Notes: generated from the letters alone by a model not told the origin. A stretch of DNA of 64,000 nucleotides from Basidiobolus meristosporus CBS 931.73 (GCA_002104905.1 MCFE01000138.1:93486-157485); one strand, 5' to 3'; shown: positions 7,447-63,025, counted from the stretch's first letter. Program-made: numbers and translations.

Positions 7447-7818
7447 ATGGCTGTTACAGAATCTCTTCAGTGCTTCGTTATCATATGCTTTAATACAAAA
7501 TTCAGCAATGCCAACAATGAACCATTAAAATCATGTGCACCAACATACTATGAACTAAAGTCCCCAGACGCCTATCGATTGCCAGACAACGCTCACACAA
7601 ATTCTGCGCAGAACACTGAGACACTTTCCAACCAGAATCAGTACGACCAGGTGCAGCAAGTGGATCAAACATTGTACCAACCAACTGCGCCGACATTTGT
7701 GCAATCGTTTACTCCCGACGAGGATGACACTCATGACTCGAGTGACGACGACGATCAACCATCGTGTAAACGTTGTCAACGACGCTACTGTAGACGTGGA
7801 TACAGAGGCGGCTATTGA
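7447..7818 (+). pseudogene. Family A secreted Gln/acidic protein, copy A1, signal peptide lost (homology starts near 7508)
   Basis: Core LSNQNQYDQVQQVDQTLYQP, acidic DEDD tract and C-terminal CKRCQRRYCRRGYRGGY; N-terminus is unrelated to intact A4. Confidence 0.7.
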
Positions 7819-8566
7819 TATGAATAAGTTTAATAAATAAGATAATGTAATATATAACCGACATCACTCCAGTTTCTGACAATTGACACTAGGAAAAGTC
7901 ACAAAAGAGACATGACCACAGGGATGGGTGGAACAATGGCGAGTATGAACAGATGTTGAAGTAAGGGAAAGAGCCGATCAAGCGCCAATTTGCACAATTA
8001 CAATAGGGATGCATATTAGTTATGTGCTGGTAATGGTAGTGAGCAATAGTTGGGCTTTGGTATTTTCTCACTCTGCTGATACCAATAAGTATGAGTCAAA
8101 AGTTCCAGATTATTGGACTTGACACGCACCGAATTCTCCTTACATTATGATGGATTCTACCCTCTATAATAGCTGATTCTAGCTTGGAATGGCGATACAC
8201 TCAAGGAGACCCAATTTCCATATTGACTAAACCCATAGAAAACTTATTGAATAAGCTACCCATTACCTTCCAGCAGTACTTCAAGACGTTTCTCACCCCT
8301 CTCCTGGATTAGTCGATGGACTTTGGGTCATCAGAGGGAAGTGCGGAAATTGGCATGGTGATGAGTTTGTCAAATACCCTTGTTTTCATGATGGTAACGA
8401 CTATATTTCTGTTATCACGTAAAAGGCGAAAAACAAAATGAATAATGGGACTTTATTGGATTTGGGCTCAAGTGCAGTCGGTGTGTCATTGAGTGTCTTC
8501 CATGGGCTCAGTATACTGTGAGTCCTGATCAGCACAGTCATCGCCACATTGAACATCTTCCATGGG

Positions 8567-9064
8567 CTATGTGTACTGTGTATCTTGGTCAGAGCATCCT
8601 TCAACGCATTGGGTGTCTACTACTGGTGTGGAGTATGTCTCATCTTGTGCAGGCTGAACCATAACAATGGGGTAACCAGAGCCATCTTCGGAGTGTTCAG
8701 CACCCTTCTGTTTGGCGTACTCGGATGCGCTGGCTGAGCCTTCTACTTCGAGACTAGGGCCTGCTTGAAACTGAACATCGAGAATCTTGTCACTGTTGGC
8801 GTTGGCAGTGTTCAGATTGTCATGCTTTCTGGTCACGGTGGTGAACACCTGACGCAACAATGGCACTTGGACGTTTAGCGTTTCAACAGAGGGCTGAGCC
8901 TGGGCTTGCTGGTAGCAGTTGCTTGCTTGGTCCGAGCATGAATACCTGCGATAACGGACTCTTCTATGCTCACGGTTGCATGATTCGGAGCATGGGACTG
9001 GAGCAGAAATGGTGGCTTGAAGTGAAGCAAGGCCCAAGATCAATGATACAATAAATGTACGCAT
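8567..9064 (-). CDS. Family B secreted protein B1 (165 aa), C-terminally shortened by GAG>TAG; homology continues to about 8484
   Basis: Signal peptide MRTFIVSLILGLASLQATISA; CxxxC..RRVRYRRYSC; core LLRQVFTTVTRKHDNLNTANAN; the paralog B2 reads through the stop position as Glu. Confidence 0.8.
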   Translation of the reverse strand: MRTFIVSLILGLASLQATISAPVPCSESCNREHRRVRYRRYSCSDQASNCYQQAQAQPSVETLNVQVPLLRQVFTTVTRKHDNLNTANANSDKILDVQFQAGPSLEVEGSASASEYAKQKGAEHSEDGSGYPIVMVQPAQDETYSTPVVDTQCVEGCSDQDTQYT

Positions 9065-9384
9065 CTTTGAGAACTACTGAGTTCATTGCTGAATTCACTC
9101 TGGAATATATAGCATGGGAACCATCATAACACGGTTACTACATTGATGGTAGCAATAGTTAGTTAACTTTGATCAGATCTTAAATTAGCATTCCCTCTAC
9201 CATCATCGACTCAATCGCATTGATATCGCGTGGTTTCCATGATTACAGTACGATAAATACACCAATATATACACATATGCTTTTGATAATATTTCACCTG
9301 TAGTAGGGTAATTCACGAATCACGGCTGATGATGTTTCATATTAATATAGGGTGACCAAATGAAATGTTTATTTAATCAATGTA

Positions 9385-9927
9385 TCAATTCCCACTGAAA
9401 TATCTGATCTTGAAGTACTTATGTGCCGACCTCTTGTACTTCTTCTGGCCTCCGCCATAGCTATGGGCGGCTGGCTGGGTGATGATGATCCGGGGCTGTT
9501 GCTGCTTAGGCTGATAGAGGGTCTGGTCGATAACCTGCGCTTGGTCAAACTGATTGGAGTTTGACAGAGCATCAGCATCACTGGATGAGTGAGCGTTCAC
9601 TCTGTCCAACAATGCCTTTCTTGGCTGCATGTCGGCTATATTGAAGTTAGGCATGTTGTAGGATGACTCTGGCTGAGTTGAAGTGTCATCCATTGAGTCT
9701 TCACCTTCGCCTTCATCTTCACCCCCATTCTCACCCATATAGTCATCACCCTCGTCCTGTTCCGGCTGATAGTCATCTGCAGGCGATTGAGTTTCTTGGT
9801 AGCAAGGACTTACTTGCTCCCCGCACAAACTGTCACCATAGCTAACCTGAGAAGAGGTATCTTCTGTGGCAGGGAATGCATGGATAGAAGCAAGGTACAC
9901 TGCGAGTAAAGTCAGAGTAAGCTGCAT
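9385..9927 (-). CDS. Family C secreted acidic/Gln-rich protein C1 (180 aa)
   Basis: ATG start, signal peptide MQLTLTLLAVYLASIHA, CxxxxxxC, acidic tract, ALSNSNQFDQAQVIDQTLYQP, basic/aromatic tail KKYKRSAHKYFKIRYFSGN; four further paralogs in the window. Confidence 0.85.
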   Translation of the reverse strand: MQLTLTLLAVYLASIHAFPATEDTSSQVSYGDSLCGEQVSPCYQETQSPADDYQPEQDEGDDYMGENGGEDEGEGEDSMDDTSTQPESSYNMPNFNIADMQPRKALLDRVNAHSSSDADALSNSNQFDQAQVIDQTLYQPKQQQPRIIITQPAAHSYGGGQKKYKRSAHKYFKIRYFSGN

Positions 9928-10563
9928 TTTGATGAATAGCGTAAAACCAGTCGTAAGCTCACTTTATAGTGGTAGTTGGCATAGTCTACTATACTACACC
10001 CTATATCTGACTCACTTGAGGCCATGAATTCACATGCTATGTCCTGCTTCTGTTGCCCATCAACTAACGACTTGTGAAGATATGAGCTCACAAAGATAGA
10101 CAAAGGTAGTCCCTTAATCAACCAATGGTGTTTATTTTGTTCTATTACAATATAGTGTTTCTCCAGTTGTAGGACGTTCATCCTTGGCCCTATTAGTCGG
10201 TGATCATTGATTCAAACAACCATTTAGATATTGGCATGGTTTAGTTATTAGCAATCAAGTTAGATTAGCTTTAAGAACAAATGGTATGGATAATCGAGAT
10301 TTATTGAATTAAGTGCGGTTGTCGGTACATTGAGTGTCTTCCATAACGTCAGCATATGCCAGCAAAGTGATGGCGACTTGAGGTGGTTGATGCAATGCAT
10401 GATGCTAAATCGTAAATCTAGCTCAGTATACTACCAAATGATGACTGGTAAAATATCAATTCATTCATAATCCCAAAACACTCACTAAGATTGCTACAGG
10501 TTACTATATAACAAGAGTAGCTTAGCGCCCTTCGACAATGAAATCAAGAACTACATAAGAACG

Positions 10564-10608
10564 AAGCCATTCCTGTGTGCTCACCTCAAGCCATTCCTGT
10601 GTGCTCAC
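10564..10608. repeat. 24-bp tandem duplication of a conserved non-coding motif (AAGCCATTCCTGTGTGCTCACCTC)
   Basis: Two adjacent copies; the motif also occurs near 14471, 34645 and 51698. Confidence 0.85.
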
Positions 10609-10865
10609 ATTTTGGTTTGTCCCTTCACTACCGCATATGTCATTCCAAAGTGGTATAGCAAGCCCAGAATTGAAGAGGAATGTACTGAAGTGATTGGTCG
10701 CCTGGATTACGGTTTCAATCAACCCCTATTCACTGATGATTAACTTTACTCACCTTTGCTTCATAATTTAGTAAACTGGGTTTGGTAGCTGATGATCGTT
10801 GATGAATCTAGCAAACCATACATAAAAGCAGCTGCTTGCCTTCCAGTGTGTCATCAAAAGCCAAT

Positions 10866-11272
10866 ATGCAGCGCACTTTCCGCATTCTATCCGCCTTTGT
10901 ATTCCTATTCGGTGTATCTTATGCATCGCCCATTGCAACGTATGACAACTAGCAAATAGACCAATGGACTTTGGTGGCAATGCCGACAATGGACCATTAG
11001 TGTCATATGCACCAACATACTGTCAACTAGAGTACCCAAACGCCTATCCATTGTTGGACAACGCTCAGACGAATTCCGCACAGAACGCTCAGGCACTTTC
11101 CAACCAGAATCAATATGAGCAAGTGCAGCAAGTAGATCAGACATTGTACCAACCATCTGCATCGACATATGTGCAATCATTTACTCCCGATGAGGATGAC
11201 ACTCAAGACTCGAGTGACGACGACGATCAGCCATCGTGTGAACGTAGACGTAGATACAGAGGCGGCTTTTGA
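10866..11272 (+). pseudogene. Family A copy A2, with a premature TAG (10950-10952) and a frameshift after the signal peptide
   Basis: MQRTFRILSAFVFLFGVSYASPIATYDN* followed by a shifted ORF 10964-11272 matching A4. Confidence 0.8.
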
Positions 11273-11299
11273 CTCAATCGGATCATGTAAACACTAGTT

Positions 11300-11377
11300 T
11301 GGCATTCATAATAAATCCTATCGTATATGGCATTCATAATAAATCCTATCGTATATGGCATTCATAATAAATCCTAT
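11300..11377. repeat. About 2.8 x 28-bp tandem repeat (TGGCATTCATAATAAATCCTATCGTATA) in the 3' UTR of A2, containing AATAAA
   Basis: Read directly; a single copy lies at about 15238 after A4. Confidence 0.9.
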
Positions 11378-11780
11378 AAAATAATCGCTACTTCTGTAAA
11401 CTATCCAACACACACATTTCTTCTGCAAACAAGATTACACCAACTGACATCAGAGGAGACGTGACCACAGGGATGTGTGGAATGAGCATCACGAACATTT
11501 TGGTTTTGTTCTCACCAATTTGCGAACAATAATGATTAAACTACTAAAATGGAAGTGACAAGCAATCTACATAAATGAATGATGGTATAGGTAATGAAGT
11601 GCGTAGATCGATGATACATCGGTTTAATTGGCTGTGAATTGTTTATATACATATTTTTGTGGTTTGATGATTGGCCACATAGAATAGCTATCAACTTACT
11701 CAGCTGGGCTTCGGTTGCTGATGATTGCAGATAAACACAAAAGCAACTTTTTGCATCCCAGTGTGTAACTAAGTGCCAAT

Positions 11781-12167
11781 ATGCAACGTAATTTCCGCAT
11801 TTTATCCACGCATTTTATCCACCTTGGTACTCCTATTCGGAGTATCCTATGCATCGCCTATTGCTACATATGGCAACCAATAGGTAGACCTGGGTGTCCA
11901 AGTGGACTATGAGACTGAACCATCGATGCCATATGCGCCGACAGGTTACCAGCTGGAGTCCCCGATCACCTATCCCTTGTTGGACAATGTTGAAACTAAT
12001 TTCGTACAGAATGCTCGGGCACTTTCCAACCATCTACGTCGACATATGTGCAATCATTTACCCCAGACGAGGATGAAAACCAAGACTTGGGTAACCACGA
12101 TGATCAGCCATCGTGTAGACGTTGTCAACGACGCCACCGTAGACGTAGATACAGAGACAGCTATTGA
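11781..12167 (+). pseudogene. Family A copy A3 (internal duplication in the signal sequence, TAG at 11881, 49-bp deletion)
   Basis: Aligns to A2/A4; CATTTTATCCA is duplicated; the deletion lies between two CCAACCA repeats. Confidence 0.8.
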
Positions 12168-12833
12168 TGAAAACAGGTTGTTGGTATTTCTACATTTTAT
12201 AACTGTTGTGATACCAGCATAATAAATGGGGTAATGTATCATATAATCGATGTCACACCAGTTTCCCTATTCATGTAGACTATCAAGTACACACAATTAT
12301 CGTGCAAATAAGCTTTCAAATATGAACACTGAAAAAAATGTTACATAAGAGATGTGCCTACAGGGATGGGTGGAATAACGGCGAGTATCAACAGAGGTTG
12401 AAGTAAGGGAAAGTGCCGATCAAGCGCTAGTTTGCATAATTATAACACGAATCGCTCGTCTGTGGTGCATATAATATGTGCTCTCAGGATACCATGTTTT
12501 CTGGTAATGGTAGTGAGTAGTAGTTGGAATTCTTGAGATAGCGATACACTCTAGGATGCCCGATCTCCATATTGACTAAGCCCTCGTTGAGCTTATTAAA
12601 TAAGCCACTCACTACCTTCAAGCAGTACTTCAAGACGTTTCTTACCCTTCTCCTGAATTGGTGACTGGACTTCGGATCATCAGAGCGAAGTGTGGAAATA
12701 GGCTTGGTTTTAAGTTTGTCAAACGCTCTTTGCTCCCATGCTGTTAATGGCTATATTTCTGCTCACATATGAGGCGAAAAATAAAATGAATAATGGAACT
12801 TTATTGGATTTGGGCTCAAGTGCAGTCGTTGGT

Positions 12834-13412
12834 TCATTGAGTGTCTTCCATGGGCTCAGTATACTGTGAGTCCTGATTAGCACAGTCATCACCACATTGA
12901 GCATCTTTCATGGGCTCAGTGTACTGTGTATCTTGGTCAAAGCATCCTTCGATGCATTGGTTGTCCACTACTGGTGTGGAGTATGTCTCATCTTGTGCAG
13001 GCTGAACCATAACAATGGGGTAACCAGAGCCATCTTCGGAGTGTTCAGCACCCTTCTGTTTGGCATACTCGGATGCGCTGGCTGAGCCTTCTACTTCGAG
13101 GCTAGGGCCTGCTTGAAACTGAGCATTGAGACTCTTGTCATTGTTGGCGTTGGCAGTGTTCAGATTGTCATGCTTTCTGGTCACGGTGGTGAACACCTGA
13201 CGCAACAATGGCACTTGGACGTTTGGCGTTTCAACAGTGGGCTGAACCTGGACTTACGGGTAGCAGTTGCTTGCTTGGTTGGAGCATGAATACCTGCGAT
13301 AACGGACTCTTCTATGCTCACGGTTGCATGATTCGGAGCATGGGACTGGGGCAGCAATGATGGCTTGAAGAGAGGCAAGGCCCAAGATCAATGATACAAT
13401 GAATGAACGCAT
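12834..13412 (-). pseudogene. Family B copy B2, nonsense CAA>TAA at 13254-13256
   Basis: ATG at 13412 (MRSFIVSLILGLASLQAIIAAPVPCSESC); otherwise collinear with B1. Confidence 0.8.
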
Positions 13413-13729
13413 ATTTGAGAACTACTGAGTCCATTGCCAAGTACACTCGGGAATATATAGCATGGGAGCCATTATAACATGGTTGCAACATTGATGGTAG
13501 CAATAGTTAGTTAACTTTGATGAACTCACGCTTTATCAGATTGAAAATCAGCATTCTCTCTAATATCGTCGACTCCATCGCATTGATATTGCGTAGTCTA
13601 CATGATCAATGTACGATAAATAAACCGATACATACACCAATAAATACATATATACTTATGATATTTCAGCCGTAGTATGGTGATTCACGAATCACGGCTG
13701 ATGATGTTTCATATTGATTTAAGGTGGCC

Positions 13730-14095
13730 AAATGGCATGTGTATTTATTCAATGTATCTGTTCTTGAAGTACTTATGCGCAGATCTCTTGTACTTCTGGC
13801 ATCCACCACGGCTACGGGTGGCTGGCTGGATGATGATGATCTAGGGGCTGTTGCTGCTCAGGCTGATAGAGGGTTTGGTCGACTACCTGCGCTTGGTCAA
13901 ACTGATTAGAGTTCGACAGGGCATCAGCATCACTGGATGAGTGAGCGCTCACTCTATCCAACAAGGCCTGTCTTGGCTGCATGTCGGCTATATTGAAGTT
14001 GGGCATATTGTAGGATGACTCTGGCTGAGTTGAAGTGTTATCCATTGAGTCCTGACCTTCGCCTTCATTGCCGCCCTCATTCACATCCATATAGT
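13730..14095 (-). pseudogene. Family C copy C2, 5' half missing and 3' frameshifted
   Basis: Near-identical to the 3' two-thirds of C1; the signal-peptide exon is replaced by unrelated sequence at about 14095. Confidence 0.8.
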
Positions 14096-14805
14096 TGTGA
14101 TAATCTTATAATGAATATACATTGATACCCTTGACTATCACTACTCCTATGACTCTATAATTTCAAAGCAACACAACACTCGGTTAATGTTACGACTTGA
14201 AGATTTATCTGGTGCAATAGAGGCCAATTGGGTATAGGCGATGTATGAAGCCTGTGAAGTGATGGTGAGTTGCGTTTTTGCTAAACCTACCCAAGGTGGT
14301 TGATGCAATGCATAATGCTAAATCGTAAATCAGGCTCAGTATACTATTGACTGATGGCTGGTGAAGATGTTAATTCATTCGTAATCCCATAACACTCACA
14401 AAGATTGCTACAGGTTGCTATATAACCAGAGTAGCTTAGCATTCTAAAACTATGAAATCAAGAAGACCGAAGCCATTCCTGTGTGCTCACCTCAAGCCAT
14501 GAGTCACTTTCGCTTGTCCCTTTGCTACCGCATATGTCATTCCAAAGTGGTATAGTAAGACCAGTATTGAAGAGGATTGTTTATTTATTTTTCTTGATGT
14601 ACTAACGTGATTGGTCGCCTGGATTACGGTGTTAATCAACTCTTACTCACTGATCATTGCAATGAAAGTGAAATGGTGATTAACTTTACTCACCTTTGCT
14701 TCATAATTTAGTAAACGGGGTTTGGTAGCTGATGCGCGCTGATGAATCTAGCAAAGCATACATAAAGGCAACTGTTTGCCTTTCAGTGTGGCATCACAAG
14801 CCAAC

Positions 14806-15210
14806 ATGCAACGCACTTTCCGCGTTCTATCATCCTTGGTATTCCTATTCGGTGCATCTTATGCATCGCCCATTGCAACCTATGACAACCAACAAGTAGA
14901 CCAGGGCATCCCAGTGGACTTCGACAATGAGCCATTAATGTCATACACACCAACATACTATCAACTAGAGTCTCCAGACGACTATCCATTGTTGGACAAC
15001 GCTCAGACTCATTCTGCACAGAACGCTGAGGCGCTTTCCAACCAGAATCAATATGAGCAAGTGCAGCAAGTCGATCAGACATTGTACCAACCATCTGCAC
15101 CGACATATGTGCCATTGTTTACTCCCGACGAGGATGACACTCAAGACTCAAGCGACAACGACGATCAGCCATCGTGTGAACGTAGACGTGGATACAGAGG
15201 CGGCTTTTGA
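14806..15210 (+). CDS. Family A intact secreted protein A4 (134 aa)
   Basis: ATG at 14806; signal peptide MQRTFRVLSSLVFLFGASYA; ALSNQNQYEQVQQVDQTLYQP; acidic tract; tail CERRRGYRGGF; AATAAA downstream. Confidence 0.85.
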   Translation: MQRTFRVLSSLVFLFGASYASPIATYDNQQVDQGIPVDFDNEPLMSYTPTYYQLESPDDYPLLDNAQTHSAQNAEALSNQNQYEQVQQVDQTLYQPSAPTYVPLFTPDEDDTQDSSDNDDQPSCERRRGYRGGF

Positions 15211-15510
15211 CTCAATCCGATCATGTAAACACTTGTTTGGCATTCATAATAAATCCCATCATAAAATCGCTATTTCTGTAAGCTATCCAACATATACAAA
15301 CAAGATTACACCAACTGATATCAAGAAGAAACAGCGTAGACGTGACCACATGACAAGCAATAAGAATACTTCTGTCAGGCATATTGGACGGCAAAACCTA
15401 TATGCTCACAGCATCATGAACATTCTTTTAATGACTCCTCACATGATTCATTTTCGCTTTGTTCCCACAAAACTACGAATAATAACAAATAAACTACTAA
15501 AATGGAATGG

Positions 15511-15560
15511 TGGTGAGCAATCGTGGTGAGCAATCCTGGTGAGCAATCGTGGTGAGCAAT
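15511..15560. repeat. 4 x 13-bp tandem repeat (TGGTGAGCAATCG)
   Basis: Read directly; no spacers. Confidence 0.9.
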
Positions 15561-15649
15561 AGATGGAAGATTGTTGATCAATGGTACATAGGTTCAATTG
15601 GCTGGGGATTGTTTGATGATTGGGCACCTACAAGAGCTATCAACATAAG

Positions 15650-15737
15650 GAAAACTTTACTTAATGAAAACCAAGACTCGAATGAAGATGACAATCAGAC
15701 ATCATGTTACCGTAGACGTAGATACAGAGACAGCTAA
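15650..15737 (+). pseudogene. 3' remnant of family A (A5)
   Basis: NQDSNEDDNQTSCYRRRRYRDS* matches the A1/A3 tail. Confidence 0.65.
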
Positions 15738-16089
15738 TGATATGAACAGGCCTAATACTATTGTGATCCCACTACAATAAATAGGTCAATGGATCATGTA
15801 GTCATTACTACTCCTATTCATGTAAGCAATTAGCAAGTAGAGCAGTCTCCGTACAATGCCATATATGCCGAACTACTGGAGTCCATTGCTTTACAGCTCT
15901 CAGGAACTTGACCAGATATTGTATCAACTATCTGCGCCAGCTGACTTATCCATTTTGACTACTCAGAAAGGTACTACTGGCTGATATTGCGGGACTGCTT
16001 TATTCTGCTCTAACCTTACTCTTGTTCCTGTGCTGGCATGGATCATACTTCTGCTATTACATATTAAGCAAGCAATATATAATCAACGC

Positions 16090-16400
16090 AAATCTAATGG
16101 CTTTAAGGTCATTCCCCAGACTCAATATAGTGCTCATTTTGTTTAGCACACTCATTGCCATATTGGGCATCTTCCATGGGCTCTGTGAACTGTGTATCTT
16201 GGTTAGAGCATCCATCAATATAACAGGTGTCTTCATCTGCTATGGAGTATGTCCTATATTGCACAGGCTGATCCATAACAATGAGGAAATATTTGTCATA
16301 CCTGAATGAACTGTCTTTACCTTCTTACTCAGGCCAGGGCCTGCCTGGAACCTGACATCAGCTCTTCTGTCTATCCCCAAGAGTTAAAGGCTGGGATCTG
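16090..16400 (-). pseudogene. Decayed 3' remnant of family B
   Basis: CATCTTCCATGGGCT..GTGTATCTTGGTTAGAGCATCC..TGGAGTATGTC..GCACAGGCTGATCCATAACAATG aligns with 8556-8670. Confidence 0.65.
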
Positions 16401-24200: not shown

Positions 24201-24645
24201 GCTTGGGAAGAACCCAGGGATGATTTAAACAGTCTAGTTCATCCGGTATAAAGTAGCACTTTTCTAGGATTGGATTCATTACTAAGCCGTATCTCTTACA
24301 TTTGTGCATCGATAACAACAGTGTCGTGAACGACCATTACTCACTACTCAGTATCATCTAGACAATTGCTCCGTTTACAACTGGTTTATTGACCATTACA
24401 TAGGAAAAGATCTATGTACTTCGTCTTTGAGGCATCCATTGAATTTCAGTTTAATTTAGTCTGCCAAACCCGGGATTTTGTATTTATTGATCGTAAATTC
24501 AATTGCCATATCTTCATTATGAAAAGACACTGATGGGTAACGACAAAACAATAGGTAAAGATACTTTATGCTGCTTGCTTCGAGTGATGGTAGTACTTCA
24601 AGAATATTTCCTTTCAAACTCTTTCGTATGGACTAAGTACAAGCT

Positions 24646-24727
24646 GGTGAGGTGGCCGAGTGGTCTAAGGCGCTGCGTTCAGGTCGCAGTCTCTTCGGAG
24701 GCGTGGGTTCGAACCCCACCCTCATCA
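24646..24727 (+). tRNA. tRNA-Leu(CAG): tRNA-Leu(CAG), intronless, long variable arm
   Basis: Acceptor stem GGTGAGG/CCTCATC+A; A-box TGGCCGAGTGG; anticodon arm CTGCG-TTCAGGT-CGCAG; B-box GGTTCGAACCC; TTTT terminator downstream. Confidence 0.95.
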
Positions 24728-25097
24728 TCTATTTTACTCTTAGCTTGCACAAAAATGATAAGAGGAAATATCACAATGCTAACAGTCACTGAGCAGTCTG
24801 TCAATCTCGAATCTTTGTGTTACCTAAGTCAATCCGGTAACCCTGCCAGACACACTCTCTAATATCAAACTTTTCGGTGGAGGGCAGCATCACTAAAGAC
24901 TGAGGGTGAGTATGTTAGTACGTAAGCGAAAATCTAATATTAATGCCCGCAGCTCTGATCATGATACAGGTGTGTGCAAGTAAAAAGCTAATCACAAGTA
25001 ACAACAAGTATAAGAATGTCATTTGGATTTTATTGATTGAGAATTTTCAGTTGTAGCGTGGTGATGACTACCTACATCTTCAGCTCATGTCATCGCA

Positions 25098-25595
25098 CTA
25101 ATTGTATTGAACGTTTTGCTCTGGACAATCTTCTACGCATTGCATCTCTGCCACAGGGGTTGTGTATTGTATATCTTGGGTGGGCTGCATCAGGACGTAG
25201 GGAGAGAAAGAACTATCTTCCAAGTGTTCCGCTCCCTTTTGCTTAGCATATTCTAATGCATTGGCCCTACCCTCCAGTTCGAGACTGGGCCCTGCTTGAT
25301 ACTTGACATTGAAGCCTTTGTTGCTGTTGGCGTTAGCAATGTTCAGGTTATCGTGCTTTCTGGTCACCGTGGTGAAAACCTGGCGCAATAACGGGGATTC
25401 GACATTCGTCGTCTTAACGACAGGCAAAACTCGAGCGTTTTGGTAGCAACCGCTCGCATACTGTGCACATGGTAAGCTGCGATAATGAACCCCTCTATAC
25501 TCGCGAGTACATGGAGAAGAACAGCCGATTGGGGCAGCAACGGCAACTTGAAGAGCGGCAAGGCTTAGAATCACTGCTACGGTAGTAGAGCGCAT
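25098..25595 (-). CDS. Family B intact secreted protein B3 (165 aa)
   Basis: Signal MRSTTVAVILSLAALQVAVA; CSSPC..YRSLPC; LLRQVFTTVTRKHDNLNIANAN; QCVEDC; TATA-like GCTATATAG upstream. Confidence 0.85.
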   Translation of the reverse strand: MRSTTVAVILSLAALQVAVAAPIGCSSPCTREYRGVHYRSLPCAQYASGCYQNARVLPVVKTTNVESPLLRQVFTTVTRKHDNLNIANANSNKGFNVKYQAGPSLELEGRANALEYAKQKGAEHLEDSSFSPYVLMQPTQDIQYTTPVAEMQCVEDCPEQNVQYN

Positions 25596-25969
25596 GCTGA
25601 AGAATAGCTGAGAAATAAGCTAGTTGCATAGGCCGCTATATAGCATGGGAGGCTATATAATAAGGTTAAGTCGAGGGCATAAAGTGAGTCTTGTTAGATT
25701 GCGCATGTTTTCCATTCTGTTATTGACTTTATCGAGGAAGCCTGTAACATATAAAACACATGCACTGGAATGACAGCCTCTGTATATATATATATGGTTC
25801 TATCACCGCTGCCCATACTTCTCTTCAATACTCACAATGACATTGTGTACAACGATAAGTGCCACTGTTTCTGTGTGTGCATATCAGAAAATTCTTGAGT
25901 ACTTGTACATCATCAGCATACCGAGTAATATGTTGCTCATTTTATTTCGTAAGTTTACTTTTACTAGAC

Positions 25970-26515
25970 TTAATGTCTGTTTCCACTGAAATATCTAACT
26001 TTGAAGTGGCGACGAGCAGATCTCTTATACTTCTTGTACCCACCTCTAAGCGCACGCGCTGCTGGCTGAGTGATGATAATTTGTGGCTGTTGCTGCTTGG
26101 GCTGGTACAGGGTTTGATCAATGACCTGCGCTTGGTCGAACTGGTTTGAGTTGGACAAGGCATTGGCTTTACTGGAGGAATGGCCATTGATTTTGTCCAG
26201 CAAAGCTTGGGATGGTTGAAGATTGGAAATATCGAACCCTTGCAACCCAGAGAATCCTGGCTGCTCACCCGAAGTCTCGCTTGTCTGCATTGGCTCACTC
26301 ATCTCCGAATCATCCCCCTCCTCAGTTGACGGCTGGTATTCTTGACTGGGGGCCGAAGTGTCCTGATAACAAGCACCCTGTTGTTCGACGCATGGCTCAT
26401 TGGTGAAGGCTACCTGGGAGTCACCGAGTGGGGTAGCGGAGATTGCTTGCAACGAAGCGATGGCGGAAGCTAGCAAGAGGAAGGAAAGCTGCATGACTGG
26501 CTGGTGGAGTCTCAT
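25970..26515 (-). CDS. Family C intact secreted protein C3 (181 aa; the second ATG at 26494 may be the true start)
   Basis: MQLSFLLLASAIASLQAISA signal; ALSNSNQFDQAQVIDQTLYQPKQQQP; tail KKYKRSARRHFKVRYFSGNRH. Confidence 0.85.
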   Translation of the reverse strand: MRLHQPVMQLSFLLLASAIASLQAISATPLGDSQVAFTNEPCVEQQGACYQDTSAPSQEYQPSTEEGDDSEMSEPMQTSETSGEQPGFSGLQGFDISNLQPSQALLDKINGHSSSKANALSNSNQFDQAQVIDQTLYQPKQQQPQIIITQPAARALRGGYKKYKRSARRHFKVRYFSGNRH

Positions 26516-27813
26516 GCGAATTTTGACGATTTATATCACCTCGATCCCACTCAATTAGGCTTTGTTCATAGCACTAGCTTTATGCGAGCTAGATTGATTT
26601 AACCTTTGCTACTTTACCTCTTCGTACCAAGGCTTCAAAGTGTGAAGAATGAGGGAGATCTGGTCAATGATATCCTTAATATCGTTCAAAATTCTCTCAG
26701 TTTTTGCAATAACTATCCGTGTTAGTAAGGACTTTGGTAATTTTTTACTAATGAGCTTGAGGGTTACCGTCGAGAAAGTCCAAGGTCATTGCGGTCAATT
26801 TCAATGGGGTTTGGTACTCCTTTGTATCAGTGTAGTACTGTAAGCTTAACATGCACTTTTGGTATTGTTATTCCATCTTTAAGGCAAGTATCTCTTACGA
26901 TAGTCCTGTCATTGCCTGGAAGGTATTGTCCTTTGGTAGTGCTGTTTTCTTGCTATACACATGCTTAAATATATTGCTGATCTGACCCTGCCTCAACTGG
27001 AGAGCAGCCACCACAGTCAAGCTTTGGGGCAGGCTTATTAAATTAACCTGTTATTACAAGAACCTAGGGTTGTCGCTGATTGGTGAACAATACGACTGTC
27101 ATGGGGTGTACAGCACAGTACAGGCGAGAATAAATTGATCAGCTGTTTGCCAAGAGTTGGGGATATTGAGTGGATAGTGCTTGGGATAGTTGAGGCTGCC
27201 TTGGAATTTCTTGTTGTAGTACACGCGTTTTCAATTAGTTATTTGTCAAGAAACAAGCCAAATGTGACTGTTCACTTTATTCGTGTTACGCTTTATCTAT
27301 GCTGCTACAATCGATAGCTTGGATGGCGATGCTTTCTTGCAAGACACATGCACTTATCTATTGCAAACTTTACCCTGCCACAGATGGAGTACAGCGTCGG
27401 ATTAAGAGCTCAGCCACCGACTACCACGGTCATTCTTTTGGGCAGGTCGATTATTTAACCTGTTATTTCAAGAACAGACTCATTGCTGATTGGTGCAAAT
27501 CCTTGTCACCAATGACCGGCATGGTGCATAGAGACGGTGCCGGCAAGAAGGAAATATTCATGGATGTGTTTAGCTAGTACTGGTTTCCTCAGGTAATGTT
27601 GCAGATTTGGCCTCAACTGTAACCATTCATGATTTCTGGATCATTTCTCCAAGCTTGGCCTAAGACTCAGCACTTTAGGTGGGAAGCCGCTATACTTAGT
27701 AGAAAAGGGCACATGAAGCAGCCAACACTAAGCCACCACCTGGATAAGGTGATATAAAGCAGCAGGTGTGGGCTTGTCAGTCTCAAGACTTATTGCACTC
27801 CACTTTCTCAGCC

Positions 27814-28032
27814 ATGGTATCCGATCAAGAAGCCCGTTTGTATTCTGCCGATGTCAGAGAAGAAATTGCCAGAGCCAAGAGAGCTAACAACGGGAACTAC
27901 GCCTCAGTCACAGTCAAAGGGATTCGCTGGACTTGGAGAGGACCCGGAACTGGCGAGCTGTCCTTCAAGCAGATCCTCGAAGGAAGAAAGGGGACCGCCT
28001 GCGTGGATAGCCAGACATGGGTAATCTCGTAG
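27814..28032 (+). CDS. Family E small non-secreted orphan protein E1 (72 aa)
   Basis: TATAAAG about 60 bp upstream, GCCATGG start context, AATAAA downstream; two more copies at 47781 and 48770. Confidence 0.6.
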   Translation: MVSDQEARLYSADVREEIARAKRANNGNYASVTVKGIRWTWRGPGTGELSFKQILEGRKGTACVDSQTWVIS

Positions 28033-28677
28033 GGTTTGGTTGGTGCCTACTTAGCCGGTGGACTCTTGGAGATATTGCTGTTATGGATATTTAGCTGAAG
28101 CATTGTGAAATAAATGAGTTCAAATCCGCGTTCCTTTGACCCAGCTGTATTATGCTCATTGCACTGTGAGCATCTAACATATGTGTGAACTGCTACTTTG
28201 ATCAGATATACGTGTACAACTGCCGTGTACAGGCATCCGTTCCAGCAATCAGTATCGTGTTGCACGCTCCGCACTTCTGAAGACAATCCTTTTCTGTTGC
28301 GGTCAATATGATATGGCACCCCTGAGGTCTTTGCTTTTGCCTTAGTAGCGTTGGCTTCCTTTAGAAAAGGCTTTGTTTAATTTCTGTTACCAAACAACCT
28401 AGAACTCAACGTATATCCTAAATAACCTTGAGACCGTTAAGCATCTATCAGCCGGACGCCACTTTGAATCTGCAACAGCTATTGCGCTGATCTTTGTAAG
28501 TGCTGAAGAAATCAACGTGTTTCTAAGCAGGAAACATAGATTATCTAGAACTCTTATTTTGAGTACTCCTGCAGCCATATAGGTATTTTGCTAGATTTGT
28601 TTTACCCTGATATCACGCAAATACTGTCTATTGGCAGTTTATGTATTTGGGAGCTTGCCTGTAGTCTAAGTGATCCT

Positions 28678-28726
28678 AATAGGGTGAATAGGGTGAGTAG
28701 GGTGAATAGGGTGAATAGGGTGAATA
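28678..28726. repeat. 5 x 9-bp G-rich minisatellite (AATAGGGTG)
   Basis: Read directly; the homologous site at about 49215 has only about two degenerate units. Confidence 0.9.
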
Positions 28727-29115
28727 ACCTTTCACAAGATTTGGTAATATGCTATCATGAAATTCACACACAAGTATTACTGTTGGAAGCACTAGTCTAG
28801 GTTGATGATTCTATAAACAGAATAGCAAGCATCAAACAGAAGCACTAAGACTAATTAGTGATTATAATGGGATCCCAGGCCCTGACCTTATGGGAATAAA
28901 TAGTCACATACATCTACTAGTGTATTTATACTTATTGTCCAGCATCCACCAGAGGTTTTTGACAGAGTAGCACTTTTATTTATACCGTTGTAAATGATGT
29001 GTAGCATGTATGGTTAGAATACCCCAACATACACTGTTTACTTCTTTATCCAGCTACTTTGTATACTTGCATTATTTCTAGCATTCAACATTGAACGTAT
29101 TGGATTTATTAATCA

Positions 29116-29291
29116 TCAGATACAGCATCTTTGGCCAGACTTGCATCCAGTGTCCCAGAACACGGATCTCCAACGCACAAGGAGCCTCTTGAGTTCCCTT
29201 GGGCTTGGCACGAGAGAGCATCTACGGAGCCGGAACTGGAGCTGGCCACAAGGAAGGCGACCATCAAGGAGACTGCAAATTTCTTCATCAT
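29116..29291 (-). pseudogene. Defensin-like peptide D1, frameshifted by a 22-bp deletion
   Basis: Same sequence as D2/D3 apart from a few substitutions and loss of TCCGGTAGCTGCCCCACCGGTT between GTT microhomologies. Confidence 0.85.
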
Positions 29292-30389
29292 TGTTTTGAT
29301 TGAGAGCTTAGTGTGTGAATGATGTCTAGCAGCAAGGTTAGCTCAATATATAGGCGTCATTTCCCCATTGTTGCACATACTTTCGTCGATAGTCGCTGTG
29401 GCTAGCTCTACATATGGTTGTGCAAGAGAAGAAGGTTACCTGGGTAATGTAAACCAGCTCAGAAGGTTACCTTGGTAATGTAAACCAGTTCCAGGAAATT
29501 ATATGTATTGATGGCCAACATCAAAAGAGCAGTAGCATTGAAATGGTATTTCTCGTATGGCATAGTGTCACCTCTTTATTCAAACATATAAATGATGCGG
29601 CAATAATATGCAAAATCAAAGGTAGCAATCCTTGAACTGGGCTGCTCATCACATTTTGTGCCACACAGCTTTTGCCGTGCAATACACTCATCTACAAAGA
29701 ATGTTCTAAATGCAGTACCACACGGCTGAAAGTAAGCCTTCCCTGTTAGTTTCAAGTGTAGAACTACTTTGCCGATAGTTCATTAGATAATTTATTAGGT
29801 AGATACAACATCTTTGGTGTCCCGGAATACCAACCTTTGACCAATACCTGAAGGGCGCAAGTAGAGAGTGTCAGCACAGCTGGCCTCAATAATAGCAGGT
29901 AAGGAGAGTTGCAACATGTAAAGTAACCAAGTACTCTTGAAGCATGTGCAATATAGGTCATTACGTACACTGCTAATTATCCTTCCTCTGTGCAAAGCAC
30001 TCACTCAACGGTTGTTGTGGCTAGGCAGTCTGTAACAATGGAATATGTAAACCAGCTCTATACACGAATAACAATGTAATGGTTACATTCACTCTACTTA
30101 TTGACAGTTATAGCAATCATGATATACAGCATTGTTGCTTATACAGTGTAAATGATATATAGCACTGTGGCAAACAACAGTTCAATAGATGGTTCCCAAT
30201 ACAGTTGCACATATTAAGCCCCAAAGATGAGACCAGCATATTTTGCTATACTATTGACTCCCATTATACTGCTATATAGTTGCTTCTTGCTTCTTAAGCA
30301 CTAATCTCCGTATATACAATACGGCTTGTCTCTAGCATCTGCATTGTCATGTGTACGTTCCACATTGAACGTACTGGATTTATTAATCA

Positions 30390-30587
30390 TCAGATACAGC
30401 ATCTCTGGCCGGACTTGCATCCGGTATCCCAGAGCACGGATCTCCAACCGGTGGGGCAGCTACCGGAAACGCACAAGGAGCCTCTTGAGTTCCCTTGGGC
30501 TTGGCACGAGAGAGCATCTACGGAGCCGGAACTGGAGCTGGCCACAAGAAAGGCGACCATCAGGGAGACTGCAAATTTCTTCATCAT
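30390..30587 (-). CDS. Secreted 6-Cys beta-defensin-like peptide D2 (65 aa)
   Basis: Signal MMKKFAVSLMVAFLVASS..DA; mature LSCQAQGNSRGSLCVSGSCPTGWRSVLWDTGCKSGQRCCI (C-x10-C-x4-C-x12-C-x5-CC); TATATA upstream, AATAAA downstream. Confidence 0.85.
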   Translation of the reverse strand: MMKKFAVSLMVAFLVASSSSGSVDALSCQAQGNSRGSLCVSGSCPTGWRSVLWDTGCKSGQRCCI

Positions 30588-31664
30588 TGTTTTGATTGAG
30601 AGCTTAGTGTGTGAATGATGTCTAGCAGCAGGGTTGGCTCAATATATAGGCGTCATTTCCACATTGTTGTACATACTTTCGTCGATAGTCGCTGTGGCTA
30701 GCTCTACAAATGGTTGTACATGAGAAGAAGGCTACCTGGGTAATGTAAACCAGTTCCACAGAGCTGCAGCATTGAGATGATGTTAATACACAAAAACAAA
30801 TTGGCAATCCATGAACCGGGTTGCTCATCAGACATGCTATTGTGTAGTGGTAGTCCTACACCAATAAAGCATCTTTGGCCTCTAACTGGAAAGTAAATCA
30901 AGACCTCAAGATGCATAGACAATCTCGATAATTACGTTTACTGTAACATGTACATTCCATGACTGTTGTGGCTAAGCAGTCTGTGACAACGGAATGAGTG
31001 TGGGTACATTGATTACAGTCAAATCTACCATTTGAGACTTAAAGCGGTAATGATATTCAATCGGGATATGCAAAGTCCTAGGTAACACTGTCGCTTATAA
31101 AGCATAAATGAATCTTGATTTTTAGGCCTAGATGCTGCTATTTGCAATAACACGCAAGTATTTGATATAACTTTAGTGTTTGTAACGATTTGCATTGATT
31201 TTGCTACAAGTAAATATAGATATGAGATTGCTGTCCCACTTGGGAATTGAAATATGTTGTGTTCTTTACGACGACTTAGCCGATAATTCATTAGATAATT
31301 TATTACGTAGATACAACATCTTTGGTGTTCCGGAATATCAAACTTTGACTTACGCCTGAAGGGCGCAAGTAGAGAGTGTCAACACAACTGGCCTCCATAA
31401 TGGCAGGTAAGGAAAGTTGTAATATGTAAAGTAAGCAAGTCCTCTTGACGCATGAGCAATACAGGACATCATGTACACTGTTACTTATCCTTCCTCTGTG
31501 CAAAACACTCACTCACATAAAGAGGAGGCTAGCATATTTTGCTACACTTTGGCCATAGTTACTGCTTGCTTCTTAAGCGCCAATCTCCGAATACTCTGTC
31601 CTGTTTCTAGCATCTGCATTATTGTGTGTAAATTCAACATTGAACATATTGGATTTATTAACTA

Positions 31665-31862
31665 TCAGATACAGCATCTTTGGCCAGACTTGCATCCAGT
31701 ATCCCAGAACACGGATCTCCAACCGGTGGGGCAGCTACCGGAAACGCACAAGGAGCCTCTTGAGTTTCCTTGGGCTTGGCACGAGAGAGCATCTACGGAG
31801 CTGGAACTGGAGCTGACCACAAGGAAGGCGACCATCAAGGAGACAGCAAATTTCTTCATCAT
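31665..31862 (-). CDS. Secreted 6-Cys beta-defensin-like peptide D3 (65 aa)
   Basis: Third unit of a roughly 1.28-kb tandem array; the mature peptide differs from D2 only by L>F. Confidence 0.85.
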   Translation of the reverse strand: MMKKFAVSLMVAFLVVSSSSSSVDALSCQAQGNSRGSLCVSGSCPTGWRSVFWDTGCKSGQRCCI

Positions 31863-33029
31863 TGTTTTGATTGAGAGCTTAGTGTGTGAATGATGTCTAG
31901 CAGCAAGGTTAGCTCAATATATAGGCGTCATTTCCCCATTGTTGCACATACTTTTGTCAATAGTCGCTGTGGCTAGCTCTACAAATGGTTATGCAAGAGA
32001 AGAAAGTTACCCGGGTAATGTAAACCAGCTCAGAAGGCTACCTGGGTAATGTAAACCAGTTCCACAAAGCTGCAGCATTATGGCATAGTGGTACAGAGTT
32101 AATGTGGTATTAATACACAAAATCAAAATCCATAAACCGGGTTGCTCATCAGATATGCTATTGTGTAGGGGTAGTTCTACACCAATAAGGCATCTTTGGT
32201 CTCTAACGGGAAAGTAAATCAGGACCTCGAGATGCATAGACAATGTTGATAATTACGTTTACTGTAGCATGTACATTCTATGGCTGTTGTGGCTAAGCAG
32301 TCTGTAACAATGGAATGAGAGTGAATACCGTTTGAGACTTAAAGCGGTAATGATATTCAATCAACATATGCAACGCCCTAGGTAGCACTGTCGCTTATAA
32401 AGTATAAATGATATATAACATTGTTGCACATGGTCTGCGATAAACACTAGCTAGAGAACCCCAAAAATACCGATGAATCTTGATTTTAAATCTAGATGCC
32501 GCTATTTGCAATAACACGCAAGTGTTTGTTGGATGACTCTTTGATTTTTCGTCATTCCACATACAAGTAAATATAGATATGACTAAGTGGTATGCAATGG
32601 CTTTGTGGATAAGAAGCTTACTACTTTTCATTCATTAAAGTAGTGACTAGTGGTGAAGTTTATCCACAGCTTACATTAATAAGACTTTACCCGTGGAAAT
32701 ACACACTGAAGATTAAGATATTTACCATCTGGGCACTAACTGCCTGATCCTCTTTCCCTCATATCCCGACATGTGCTTGTGCATACAAGTGCGTTGTTAG
32801 ACTTGGTATTGCCACTATTGCCCTACTTAGAGTTGAACCAAGAGTACTGGTGAAATGAGCGAAGTGCAATTTAATGAATCAATCAGTGCTGTTCATTGTC
32901 CTTGTCAAGCCATAACAAAATATTCGGTTAGGCCATCAATCCATTCAAATTGTTCATGTCTCTAGAGCGGGCTAAGTCTTGGCATAGTGGTGGGCTGAGA
33001 TGATAGACCCGAATCGAGGCTACATTCAC

Positions 33030-33320
33030 TGCGTTGGTGGCAAGAAAACTGAGTATGTAACACCGCAGGTTTGTTCATTCATTTCAATGAAGCCTTTTTG
33101 GATGAGAAATAGAAGTACGATAACAGCCATGCATCCTCAATACTTCGGTGCATGCGTTGGTATGCCGGCCAAACTCCGCACTTCCCATTGTAAGATGAGC
33201 TATGAGGAATCAAGTCGGCAATCTCCAGAATAACCGTGTCAAACACTCTTCTTCCGGATTGAGCGTTTTCTTTGGCGCATTTGTCTACCCATAGACCATG
33301 GTTACTGAGATGTGAGTGTA
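33030..33320 (-). pseudogene. Unknown-family pseudogene G2
   Basis: Collinear with about 22900-23250. Confidence 0.45.
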
Positions 33321-35149: not shown

Positions 35150-35632
35150 TTAGGCGCAATTGTCAGCACAATGAGTGTATTGAATATTTTGTTCTTTCAC
35201 ACATTATGTCTCTGTTACTGGGGTTGTGTACTGTACATCTTGGGTGGGCTGCATCAGAACGTAGGGAGAGAAAGAACTATAGTCCTTTTGCTCGGCATAT
35301 TCTAATGCGTTGCCCCGACCCTCCAGTTCAAGACTGGGCCCTGCTTGCTACTTGACATTGAAGCCCTGATTGCTGTTGGCATTAGCAATGTTCAGGCTAT
35401 CTTGCTTTCTGGTCACGGTGGTGAAAACCTGACGCAATAACGGGGATCGGACATTGGGTGTCTTAAAAACAGGCAAAACTCGAACGTTTTGGTGGTAATC
35501 GGTCGCATACTGTACACATGGTAAACTACGATAATGAACCCTTCTATACTCGCGAGTGCATGGAGAAGAACAGACGATTGGGGCAGCAACGGCAACTTGA
35601 TTCGCGGCAAGGCCTACAGGGATAAAGCGCAT
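35150..35632 (-). pseudogene. Family B copy B4 (shortened signal peptide, in-frame TAG and TAA)
   Basis: ATG at 35632; collinear with B3; stop at 35348-35350. Confidence 0.8.
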
Positions 35633-35844
35633 GTGGAACGAATAACGTATTTGTGGCTGTTGTATAGCATACAACATGGGTTAGCTGGTAAAATTGCTAT
35701 TATATATTTCATGGATTAATCAGGTCATTACTCACACAATTATTATACTTTTCGAGTACCATCGGTATTTTGCATTCCCTTCACTCGTTATTTTTTCAAT
35801 TTTCTTCCATTATTTTGTGGAACTCACGATGATTTTCTGGAGTA

Positions 35845-39734: not shown

Positions 39735-39860
39735 CTCCTGATAACAAGCTCCCAACTGCTCAGCACATAGGTTGTTGATGTGAGATACCTGAGATTGACA
39801 AAGATGTGATTGCCGCAACAAGCAAGAGGAAGGAAAGCTGCGTGACTGGATGGCGGAATC
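39735..39860 (-). pseudogene. 5' remnant of family C
   Basis: GCAAGAGGAAGGAAAGCTGCGTGACTGG and CCTGATAACAAGC match the C3 signal-peptide region. Confidence 0.55.
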
Positions 39861-45534: not shown

Positions 45535-45665
45535 TTACTGTGCACATGGTGAGCTGCGATAATGAGCCCTTCTATACTCGCGAGTGCGTGGAAAAGAACA
45601 GGGGCAGCAACGGCTACATGGTTCGTGGCAAGGCCTGGAATCACTGCTACGGTAACAAAGCGCAT
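45535..45665 (-). pseudogene. Family B copy B5, only the 5' 130 bp, frameshifted
   Basis: ATGCGCTTTGTTACCGTAGCAGTG.. matches the B3/B6 start; homology ends after RSSPCAQ. Confidence 0.7.
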
Positions 45666-53127: not shown

Positions 53128-53444
53128 TCTGTTTTACCAAAAAATAATGGCAGCAACTATAAGAGGAAGTATCACATTCCTAACAGTTATTGAGCAGTCT
53201 AACCATTTCGAGTACGGTGACACCAAGATCAATCCATTAACAGTGATATGGTTATGTTCGGCTAGAAGCGCTGCCAGTTGAATATAACGATACATTATAT
53301 TTGACCCCTCCTACATCATAGGCTCCAGTGGAGGATAGAGTTATTAAACCCTGAGGCTTAGTAGTTAAGTATGTAAGCAAGCATGCAGTACTAGCGCTTG
53401 CAGTTGTTATGTTGACTATTTTGCTCTGCTCAATGTTCTACACA

Positions 53445-53900
53445 TTATGTCGCTACTACAGGGGTTTTATATTGTACATCCTGAGAGGACTGCGTCAGAA
53501 CGTAGGGATATGAAGAACTATCGCCCGAGTTTTCCGTTCCCCTTTGCTTAGCATATTCTAATGTGTTGGCCCCACCCTCCAGTTCGAGACTAGGTCCTGC
53601 TTGATACTTGACGCTGAAGTCTTCATTGCTGTTGGCATTAGCAATGCTCAGGCTATGATACTTTTCGGTCACGGTGGTGATAACCTGGCGTAATAACAGT
53701 AATTGGACATTCGACATCCTAACGACAGGTAATACTCGGGCGTTTTGGTAGCAATCCTTGGCTTGTTGTGCATATGGTGAGCTATGATAATGGTCCTTTA
53801 TATACTCAAGAGTGCATAGGGAAGAACAGCCGCTTGGGGCAGCAACAGTCACTTAATTCGTGGCAAGGCTTAGAATCACTGCTACGGTAGTAAAGCGCAT
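53445..53900 (-). pseudogene. Family B copy B6, CAA>TAA in the signal peptide
   Basis: ATG at 53900, MRFTTVAVILSLATN*; the remainder is open and collinear with B3. Confidence 0.8.
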
Positions 53901-63015: not shown

Positions 63016-63025
63016 AGGGTTAGGG

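Follow-up and report, generated by a model that had tools for sequence, protein, structure and literature searches.

What kind of system is encoded by a tandemly repeated gene cassette whose products resemble no described protein, and do its genes lie together because their products act together? The question is raised by a 64,000-nt stretch of the genome of Basidiobolus meristosporus CBS 931.73 (hereafter the window; eukaryotic sequence, G+C ~41%), in which three gene families, A, B, and C, form a repeated cassette with the order A> <B <C. An initial annotation, made from the DNA sequence, had proposed that they specify a multi-component secreted assembly, such as heteromeric amyloid-like fibres, a spore-wall layer, or a charge-complementary adhesive. 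Here we show that A, B, and C represent three architectures within a single superfamily, restricted to Basidiobolus, of small, secreted-looking proteins predicted to be disordered. Constraint is concentrated in two short cores, which are carried by separate proteins in B. meristosporus and joined within single chains in Basidiobolus ranarum. We propose, with a probability of roughly 0.4, that the two cores act jointly outside the cell, serving for assembly or binding in a material of the wall, the spore surface, or an adhesive, with charged blocks modulating solubility and copy number providing dosage.

Three architectures built from shared modules

A, B, and C proteins draw on a small set of modules. 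These comprise a signal peptide; a Cys-x6-Cys loop in B and C; a B core of ~45 residues with a Val/Phe/Thr-rich, strand-like start; an Asn/Gln-rich (N/Q) core of ~36-37 residues in A and C; an Ile-rich segment followed by a Lys/Tyr/Phe tail in C; a CxxC Arg/Tyr tail in A; and variable acidic spacers. The C-terminus of B holds one to three repeats, each with a Cys-x3-Cys pair. Profile-profile comparison with hhalign identified the N/Q-rich cores of A and C as homologous (probability 98.3%, E 1.4e-14, 47 columns), so the motif that the initial annotation saw in both families is genuine and well outside what chance would give. Common to B and C is an N-terminal module consisting of the signal peptide and Tyr-x4-Cys-x6-Cys-Tyr-Gln (probability 62%, E 7.6e-5), which aligns across B, C, and the long forms described below. 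The B segment reported as invariant is present in every intact B copy and degraded in the pseudogenes B4 and B5 (numbers denote copies in the window). The three families are thus distinct in architecture but not fully independent, having the A/C core and the B/C N-terminal module in common. Homology between the B core and the N/Q core was also considered, and was rejected after local hhalign comparison of the core sub-alignments (E 0.34, probability 0.2%).

Public annotation of B. meristosporus includes ~85 B, ~60 C, and ~36 A gene models (~180 altogether), every one labelled "hypothetical protein". A word-indexed protein search found relatives only in B. meristosporus and B. ranarum. An N/Q-domain profile compared with 1.84 billion representative proteins gave 27 matches, all from Basidiobolus except two borderline TPR proteins; these two, of TPR/NLR type and aligned on their TPR repeats, were rejected as chance matches. 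In this search the core was found only in the genus. For B, the range outside the genus is based on the word-indexed search and one metagenome scan, the deep profile search having covered the N/Q domain; no B relatives were found in Joint Genome Institute (JGI) metagenome contigs.

The absence of a recognised domain, as claimed earlier, was confirmed by Pfam and Protein Data Bank (PDB) profile searches. No Pfam-A gathering threshold was reached in hmmscan runs of A3, B1, C1, B3, C3, and ten relatives (E up to 1 or 0.1), where the only scores were sub-threshold and at chance level (Lig_chan, 13.6 bits; Myticin-prepro, 17.3 bits; EVA_Class_A, 17.3 bits); the unmatched families include Curlin_rpt, PIR, hydrophobins, CFEM, and CBM_1. 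The UniRef label "CBM1 domain-containing" on some B proteins is without Pfam CBM_1 backing. An hmmsearch of PDB sequences with profiles A4 and A1 returned 0 matches at E<=1, an ESM Atlas feature search yielded nothing usable, and no paper treating these proteins was found in the Basidiobolus literature on secretome, transcriptome, or capilliconidia. Judged by their sequences, A, B, and C belong to no described family.

Two candidate memberships were tried and rejected. For Myticin-type prepro-peptides, B3 (17.3 bits) and P0010 (14.5 bits) fall short of the PF10690 cut-off of 28.5 bits; moreover, B subgroup 3 lacks the first two Cys residues and B. ranarum B lacks a dibasic site. For Kex2-processed repeat proteins, the alignments show no internal repeats ending in KR or RR, and the sole repeats, those of the B C-terminus, carry no dibasic site. 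Five representative accessions were not found in the part of the supplements consulted of the relevant survey (PMC7329392).

Fused forms in B. ranarum link the two cores

Several of the N/Q profile matches proved to be B. ranarum fusions that join a B core and an N/Q core, and these are of two types. The form termed here BC-long (P0078, P0079, P0082) runs from signal peptide through Cys-x6-Cys, B core, a repetitive Met/Glu/His/Lys spacer, N/Q core, and Ile-rich segment to the C tail. The BA form (P0025, P0083, P0086, and the gene at L009 860-1642) consists of signal peptide, B core, spacer, N/Q core, acidic tract, and a CxxC Arg-rich tail. Gene spans equal protein lengths for P0025 (L001 262-1074), P0078 (L009 5900-6985), P0079 (L010 3770-4735), and L009 860-1642, and these fusions are therefore single uninterrupted open reading frames (ORFs). 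Such "Rosetta stone" fusions argue, beyond mere physical linkage, that B core and N/Q core are functionally linked. In addition, C>B adjacency is found in two types of pair, group 1 and group 2, that have diverged past synonymous saturation: synonymous divergence (dS) between them is saturated, nonsynonymous divergence (dN) is 0.28 and 0.34, and both retain C>B.

In a tree of N/Q cores, A clusters with BA and C with BC-long (split support 91/95); in a tree of B cores, stand-alone B clusters with BC-long, apart from BA (support 82/84). Stand-alone A was seen only in B. meristosporus and BA only in B. ranarum. The simplest history would have two old lineages, each carrying both cores. Within the BC lineage, one tandem duplicate would have lost its B core to become C, and its neighbour would have lost its N/Q half to become B. 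Tandem duplication with complementary loss would leave C and B as co-oriented neighbours with a common N-terminal module, and we infer that the C>B tandem is most simply the relic of such events in a fused ancestor. The polarity from fused to split is the one we favour, the alternative being the reverse, a fusion of separate genes.

One locus of B. meristosporus bears a resemblance to the long forms. At L011 56-1127 (MCFE01000194.1), the B frame continues, after one frameshift, stop-free into a C that lacks a signal peptide, giving the order B then C as in B. ranarum; the public model P0077 bridges the frameshift by an intron. This reading may represent a decaying or a genuine fusion.

Constraint is centred on the cores

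We applied Nei-Gojobori analysis to the intact paralogs of the window and four other scaffolds. Overall dN/dS is 0.22 for A, 0.38 for B, and 0.26 for C, falling to 0.08-0.09 in the N/Q core and 0.11 in the B core and approaching 1 in the A tail and the middle of B. Members of the B. ranarum arrays give 0.11 and 0.22 at dS 0.5-0.8, and the pseudogenes of the window have lost invariant core residues. These data show that A, B, and C are real protein-coding genes with constraint centred on two short cores.

Predicted secretion, predicted disorder, and charge

The earlier description of the products as secreted is consistent with our data: each family has what looks like a typical signal peptide, with a conserved N-terminal hydrophobic stretch and small residues before the predicted cut in the alignments of A, B, and C, and AlphaFold predicts an N-terminal helix there. 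This helix is the only one in the models of C1 and the fusion P0079. Built with a family alignment (C for C1, mixed for P0079), the models have mean pLDDT (predicted local distance difference test) scores of 52 and 51 and are coil outside the signal peptide. The proteins are accordingly predicted to be intrinsically disordered.

The mature chain is a block polyampholyte, in which a cationic patch of Arg/Lys with Tyr/Phe (+3 to +8) is combined with a larger acidic tract. The order of charge in B runs from a basic N-terminus to an acidic C-terminus, and C is its mirror image. Charge computation thus agrees with the initial annotation in giving each family an acidic tract and one cationic aromatic patch. 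It contradicts the suggested charge complementarity between whole proteins: the mature net charge of all seven proteins computed is acidic, from -1 to -17. Dibasic sites are present, their position and type not being conserved between species.

Asn and Gln make up 36-44% of the 36-residue N/Q core. In an aggregation-propensity scan, the only beta-prone hot spots of the mature chain fell in conserved segments, namely where the B core begins, in the Ile-rich segment, and in the C tail; the scan is rough and its result is indicative only. In place of the acidic tract of C, the spacer is Met-rich in P0076 and P0081 and consists of Met-rich and His/Lys-rich repeats in P0078; P0076 and P0081 come from a 50,325-bp B. 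meristosporus scaffold, and P0078 is the B. ranarum protein encoded at L009 5900-6985. We regard the spacer as freely exchangeable low-complexity sequence, which may have metal-binding character.

Each gene has a TATA-like box of its own ~45 nt before the ATG. A conserved TATA-containing segment belonging to B lies in the 320-375 bp spacer between C and B, so that co-transcription with C is not needed.

Layout of the array and its copies

The interval 7.5-16.3 kb is a degenerate tandem repeat of the A> <B <C cassette, comprising ~2.3 units with a period of 3.5-4.3 kb and 82-86% identity over coding and intergenic DNA. This follows from a blastn comparison of 6-18 kb with itself, which bears out the unit of about 4 kb, repeated about 2.3 times, that had been described. 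It aligns 8183-9743 with 12532-14095 (86% identity, offset 4349), 10381-11325 with 14294-15263 (83%, offset 3913), and 7505-7818 with 10977-11272 (82%, offset 3472). Copies were located by six-frame ORFs and by tblastn with one member per family as query; A falls on the + strand, the other two families on the - strand.

At 9, 13, 25, and 35 kb, C and B share a strand, with C 320-375 bp upstream, as intact pairs at 9 and 25 kb (n=2) and pseudogene pairs at 13 and 35 kb (n=2). At 45 kb an intact C stands beside a 128-bp B remnant, and a sixth B, at 53.4 kb, has no neighbouring C. All five co-oriented C-then-B pairs previously listed are therefore present, but their description as always adjacent was too strong: over the window and five other loci, ~12 of 19 near-full B copies have C just upstream, and the members of one B subgroup are solitary. 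Decay has affected most of the array. Six of the ~20 copies in the window are intact (A3, B1, C1, B3, C3, C5), the others having stops or frameshifts or being fragments.

The array begins at its edge with A1 (7504..7818, +), which is 5'-truncated and keeps the N/Q core, acidic tract, and CxxC Arg/Tyr tail; tblastn spans only residues 41-132 of a 144-residue A, upstream signal-peptide coding sequence was not found, and A1 is a probable pseudogene. B1 (8567..9064, -) is an intact ORF of 165 residues with, in order, a signal peptide, a Cys/Arg/Tyr N-terminal part bearing the Cys-x6-Cys loop, the B core, and an acidic C-terminal part; its stop removes the last 27 residues of 192-residue relatives, and homology runs on to 8489. 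On the same strand, 320 bp upstream, C1 (9385..9927, -) is an intact ORF of 180 residues that encodes a signal peptide, the Cys-x6-Cys loop, an acidic tract, the N/Q core, the Ile-rich segment, and the Lys/Tyr/Phe tail. A2 (10857..11272, +) has an in-frame stop and a frameshift in its N-terminal part, around both of which the public model P0069 splices, and is probably a pseudogene; A2b (11809..12150, +) is a pseudogene with several frameshifts. B2 (12837..13412, -), 90% identical to the 192-residue B protein P0001, is a pseudogene with one in-frame stop in the Cys-x6-Cys region that P0005 splices out, and C2 (13754..14096, -) is a frameshifted pseudogene lacking its N-terminal part. A3 (14806..15210, +) is an intact ORF of 134 residues (public product P0056), with signal peptide, N/Q core, acidic tract, and a short Arg/Tyr/Gly tail containing a single Cys. 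A B fragment with the C-terminal part only (16112..16339, -) closes the third, partial unit.

Further along, the group-2 pair B3 (25098..25595, -; 165 residues, public hypothetical protein P0109) and C3 (25970..26515, -; 375 bp upstream of B3) is intact. B4 (35153..35641, -) is a pseudogene with two in-frame stops and neither start codon nor signal peptide, next to the frameshifted pseudogene C4 (35847..36302, -). C fragments were matched by tblastn at 39506-39852. A B fragment limited to the N-terminal 45 residues (45538..45665, -) adjoins C5 (45889..46440, -), an intact group-2 copy with 96% identity to C3. A B match by tblastn lies at 52184-52423, and B5 (53406..53900, -) is a pseudogene with three in-frame stops, a degraded core motif, and no adjacent C.

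The window's own public products are P0056, P0109, and P0122. No identical public protein was found for the intact B1 and C1, and the introns of P0005 and P0069 skip the stop or frameshift of the pseudogenes B2 and A2. Public annotation of these arrays is unreliable.

Linkage and amplification beyond the window

Four other B. meristosporus scaffolds carry arrays of the same C>B><A unit, with at least six units at L005. At L007, B copies occur without C, and a third B subgroup stands alone at L004. B. ranarum has, on separate short contigs (L002 and L003), a pure B array of five copies in 8.7 kb and a pure C array of ~nine copies in 11.7 kb. Taken with the lone B subgroup, the separate B. ranarum arrays mean that adjacency is not required.

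Amplification proceeded by duplication of whole cassettes, as the 4.3-kb A> <B <C unit and, for group-2 pairs, as a second unit of ~10 kb; many copies have since decayed. The ~10-kb unit (window 24540-35842, recurring at 45.5-53.9 kb) contains tRNA-Leu(CAG), a group-2 B and C, a short tandem array of a 1.3-kb sequence, the signal recognition particle (SRP) RNA, and U3, and is collinear at 93-94% identity with L012 1-13950 (MCFE01000446.1). The RNA genes detected in the window are those for SRP RNA, U3, and tRNA-Leu, and their place in the ~10-kb unit indicates that housekeeping RNA genes were co-amplified with the secreted-protein pair. Three tandem copies of the ~1.3-kb unit, 93-96% identical, occupy 29031-32042.

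A tRNA gene was observed 280-570 bp beyond the B stop at five places, as tRNA-Leu(CAG) at four and tRNA-Arg(CCT) at one. In the window, tRNA-Leu(CAG) lies at 24645..24729 (+), 370 bp beyond the B3 stop and within the ~10-kb unit, with a second copy at 53045-53129 adjoining B5. The other sites are L012 711-793 and 10865-10951, and L004 11110-11184, where tRNA-Arg(CCT) sits beside the lone group-3 B. Shared chromatin, a recombination hot spot, and chance are candidate explanations.

Other features of the window

Two tandem DJ-1/PfpI-family genes (40503-41231 and 43072-43887, -) have 85% DNA identity and match Pfam PF01965 at E 2e-08; adjoining them, 44187-44885 is an ORF of 232 residues, Cys-rich and with a signal-peptide-like start. 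The interval 57850-64000 is a stack of elements of long interspersed nuclear element (LINE) type, including a reverse transcriptase ORF at 61353-63041, and the last 2 kb of the window show strong GC skew.

Discussion

Constraint in this superfamily is centred on two short cores. We favour a joint extracellular role for them, in a material of the wall, the spore surface, or an adhesive. The B core and the N/Q core would act in cis in the B. ranarum fusions and in trans in B. meristosporus, where B is split from C (or A). Self-assembly, co-assembly, or attachment to the wall would depend on the short, beta-prone conserved segments. Solubility would be tuned by the acidic tract together with the cationic aromatic patch, and high copy number would supply dosage. 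A more specific version, which we consider doubtful, is that the two cores are halves of a new eukaryotic extracellular co-assembly system, a heteromeric functional amyloid or coacervate held in one chain in B. ranarum and split in B. meristosporus, and forming a Basidiobolus-specific spore-surface or adhesive material.

Several observations weigh against a joint assembly. AlphaFold shows no strand or sheet in either core (C1, P0079), and B core and N/Q core show no sequence similarity (E 0.34). Simple charge complementarity between families fails, since all three mature proteins are net acidic. A 7-mer survey of the upstream regions of seven gene sets found no shared promoter motif beyond TATA. 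The lone third B subgroup and, in the contigs examined, the separate homogeneous B and C arrays of B. ranarum show that adjacency can be dispensed with. Co-amplification can be explained by segmental duplication of whole cassettes alone, and some of the inter-scaffold copies at 93-94% identity could be haplotypes, not paralogs. The claim that the genes are kept together as a module is therefore not general. Co-amplification is a property of segmental duplication; the argument for a functional link is drawn from the fusions and from how old the adjacency is.

The foremost rival, which we judge unlikely, is that the proteins are precursors of cationic antimicrobial or signalling peptides, whose acidic tract neutralises the patch until a protease releases it and whose cores are pro-domains for sorting or processing. 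All three families do combine a signal peptide, an acidic tract, and a cationic aromatic patch of +3 to +8, and an A tail with dN/dS ~1 behind otherwise constrained sequence recalls animal precursors with a conserved pro-region and a variable mature peptide. The weak sub-threshold match of B to Myticin prepro (E 0.006, 17 bits against 28.5) points the same way, as does the report that B. meristosporus has the most Kex2-processed repeat proteins among 1461 fungal strains (PMC7329392). However, no dibasic site is conserved at the acidic/cationic boundary: C has KR there in B. meristosporus but KK in B. ranarum, whose B proteins lack dibasic sites and are almost devoid of a basic patch. The strongest constraint falls on the uncharged cores instead of the boundary, and the C tail differs hardly at all between species, whereas defence peptides typically evolve fast. 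It is similarly improbable, in our estimation, that there is no joint function at all, each protein acting alone, and that linkage and co-amplification merely follow from segmental duplication in a repeat-rich, subtelomeric, possibly polyploid genome. Whole cassettes, intergenic DNA included, were indeed duplicated at 82-94% identity; group-2 pairs travel in a 10-kb unit with tRNA-Leu, SRP RNA, and U3; the majority of window copies are decaying; and B and C form separate arrays in B. ranarum, with one B subgroup alone. Against this stand the B. ranarum fusions, in which at least five separate genes from two lineages each hold both cores in a single ORF, and the C>B adjacency, which outlasted divergence past synonymous saturation.

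Two further explanations assign the proteins other tasks. As adhesins or effectors, they would bind host gut mucosa, arthropod cuticle, or competing microbes through their cores and cationic patches, an option to which we give a low probability. Gln-rich segments are of the kind able to serve as transglutaminase substrates. The proteins are secreted-looking, genus-specific, and massively expanded, the region holds further genes for small secreted proteins, and Basidiobolus cycles among herptile guts, insects, and litter (PMC9391592); yet the cores are under strong purifying, not diversifying, selection, and the proteins contain no recognisable binding domain. Least likely is a role as extracellular ion or metal buffers or mineral-interacting proteins, for which the long Asp/Glu tracts, the Cys-x3-Cys pairs in the one to three repeats of the B C-terminus, and the Met-rich spacers of P0076 and P0081 or Met-rich and His/Lys-rich repeats of P0078 would bind cations. 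These spacers are the least conserved parts of the proteins, and nothing in the conserved cores has the character of a metal-binding site.

About 180 gene models of one fungus, an occasional human pathogen, fall into this one unstudied superfamily, which is among the largest blocks of dark secretome in early-diverging fungi. The contrast between split and fused forms in sister species predicts which parts interact, and shows cleanly, in nature, how one gene can be divided between tandem neighbours. Should the proteins prove to self-assemble into a surface or adhesive material, or to be peptide precursors of a new class, they would provide a first molecular handle on Basidiobolus spore and gut biology.

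Likeness to curli, Als, PIR, Kex2-processed repeat proteins, and peptide precursors is in single features only, and the defining feature of each fails wherever it is testable. Like curli CsgA and CsgB, whose feature is co-assembly, neighbouring genes here encode secreted-looking proteins with a common Asn/Gln-rich motif; curli is bacterial with five imperfect repeats per protein, whereas these proteins have one core each, do not match Curlin_rpt, and show no beta structure in their models. With Als-family adhesins the resemblance is compositional, in short beta-branched segments (Val-Phe-Thr-Thr-Val-Thr in B, Ile-Ile-Ile-Thr in C) within otherwise polar, secreted-looking proteins, and the Als N-terminal domain, Ser/Thr-rich stalk, glycosylphosphatidylinositol (GPI) signal, and any Pfam match are missing. 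PIR cell-wall proteins, in which a Gln-containing repeat is ester-linked to beta-1,3-glucan, are secreted fungal proteins that likewise have a conserved Gln-rich motif and a Gln-[Ile/Val]-x-Asp pattern, but the Asp-Gly-Gln of the PIR repeat is absent here and Pfam PIR is unmatched at E<=1. Animal precursors that pair an anionic propiece with a cationic peptide (myticin, dermaseptin-type) also have a signal peptide, an acidic tract, and a short cationic aromatic segment with Cys; in our proteins Myticin prepro is sub-threshold (17 vs 28.5 bits), no processing site is conserved, and the conserved element is a neutral core. The Rep1 repellents of Ustilago maydis and other Kex2-processed repeat proteins, in which B. 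meristosporus is rich (PMC7329392), are secreted fungal precursors with basic motifs, and Rep1 peptides form amyloid-like fibrils on hyphae; the proteins described here differ in having no KR-separated internal repeats, no conserved Kex2 site, and no sequence similarity.

In kind, the locus belongs with the lineage-specific clusters of genes for small secreted proteins that are commonly seen in fungi. Its nearest parallel in this respect is with the effector gene clusters of U. maydis, where small secreted proteins without known domain are likewise tandem and genus-restricted and undergo birth-and-death turnover that leaves many pseudogenes. In contrast to those clusters, the Basidiobolus superfamily comprises three architectures with common short modules and fused versions in a sister species, keeps its cores under strong purifying rather than diversifying selection, and has reached an unusually high copy number (~180 models).

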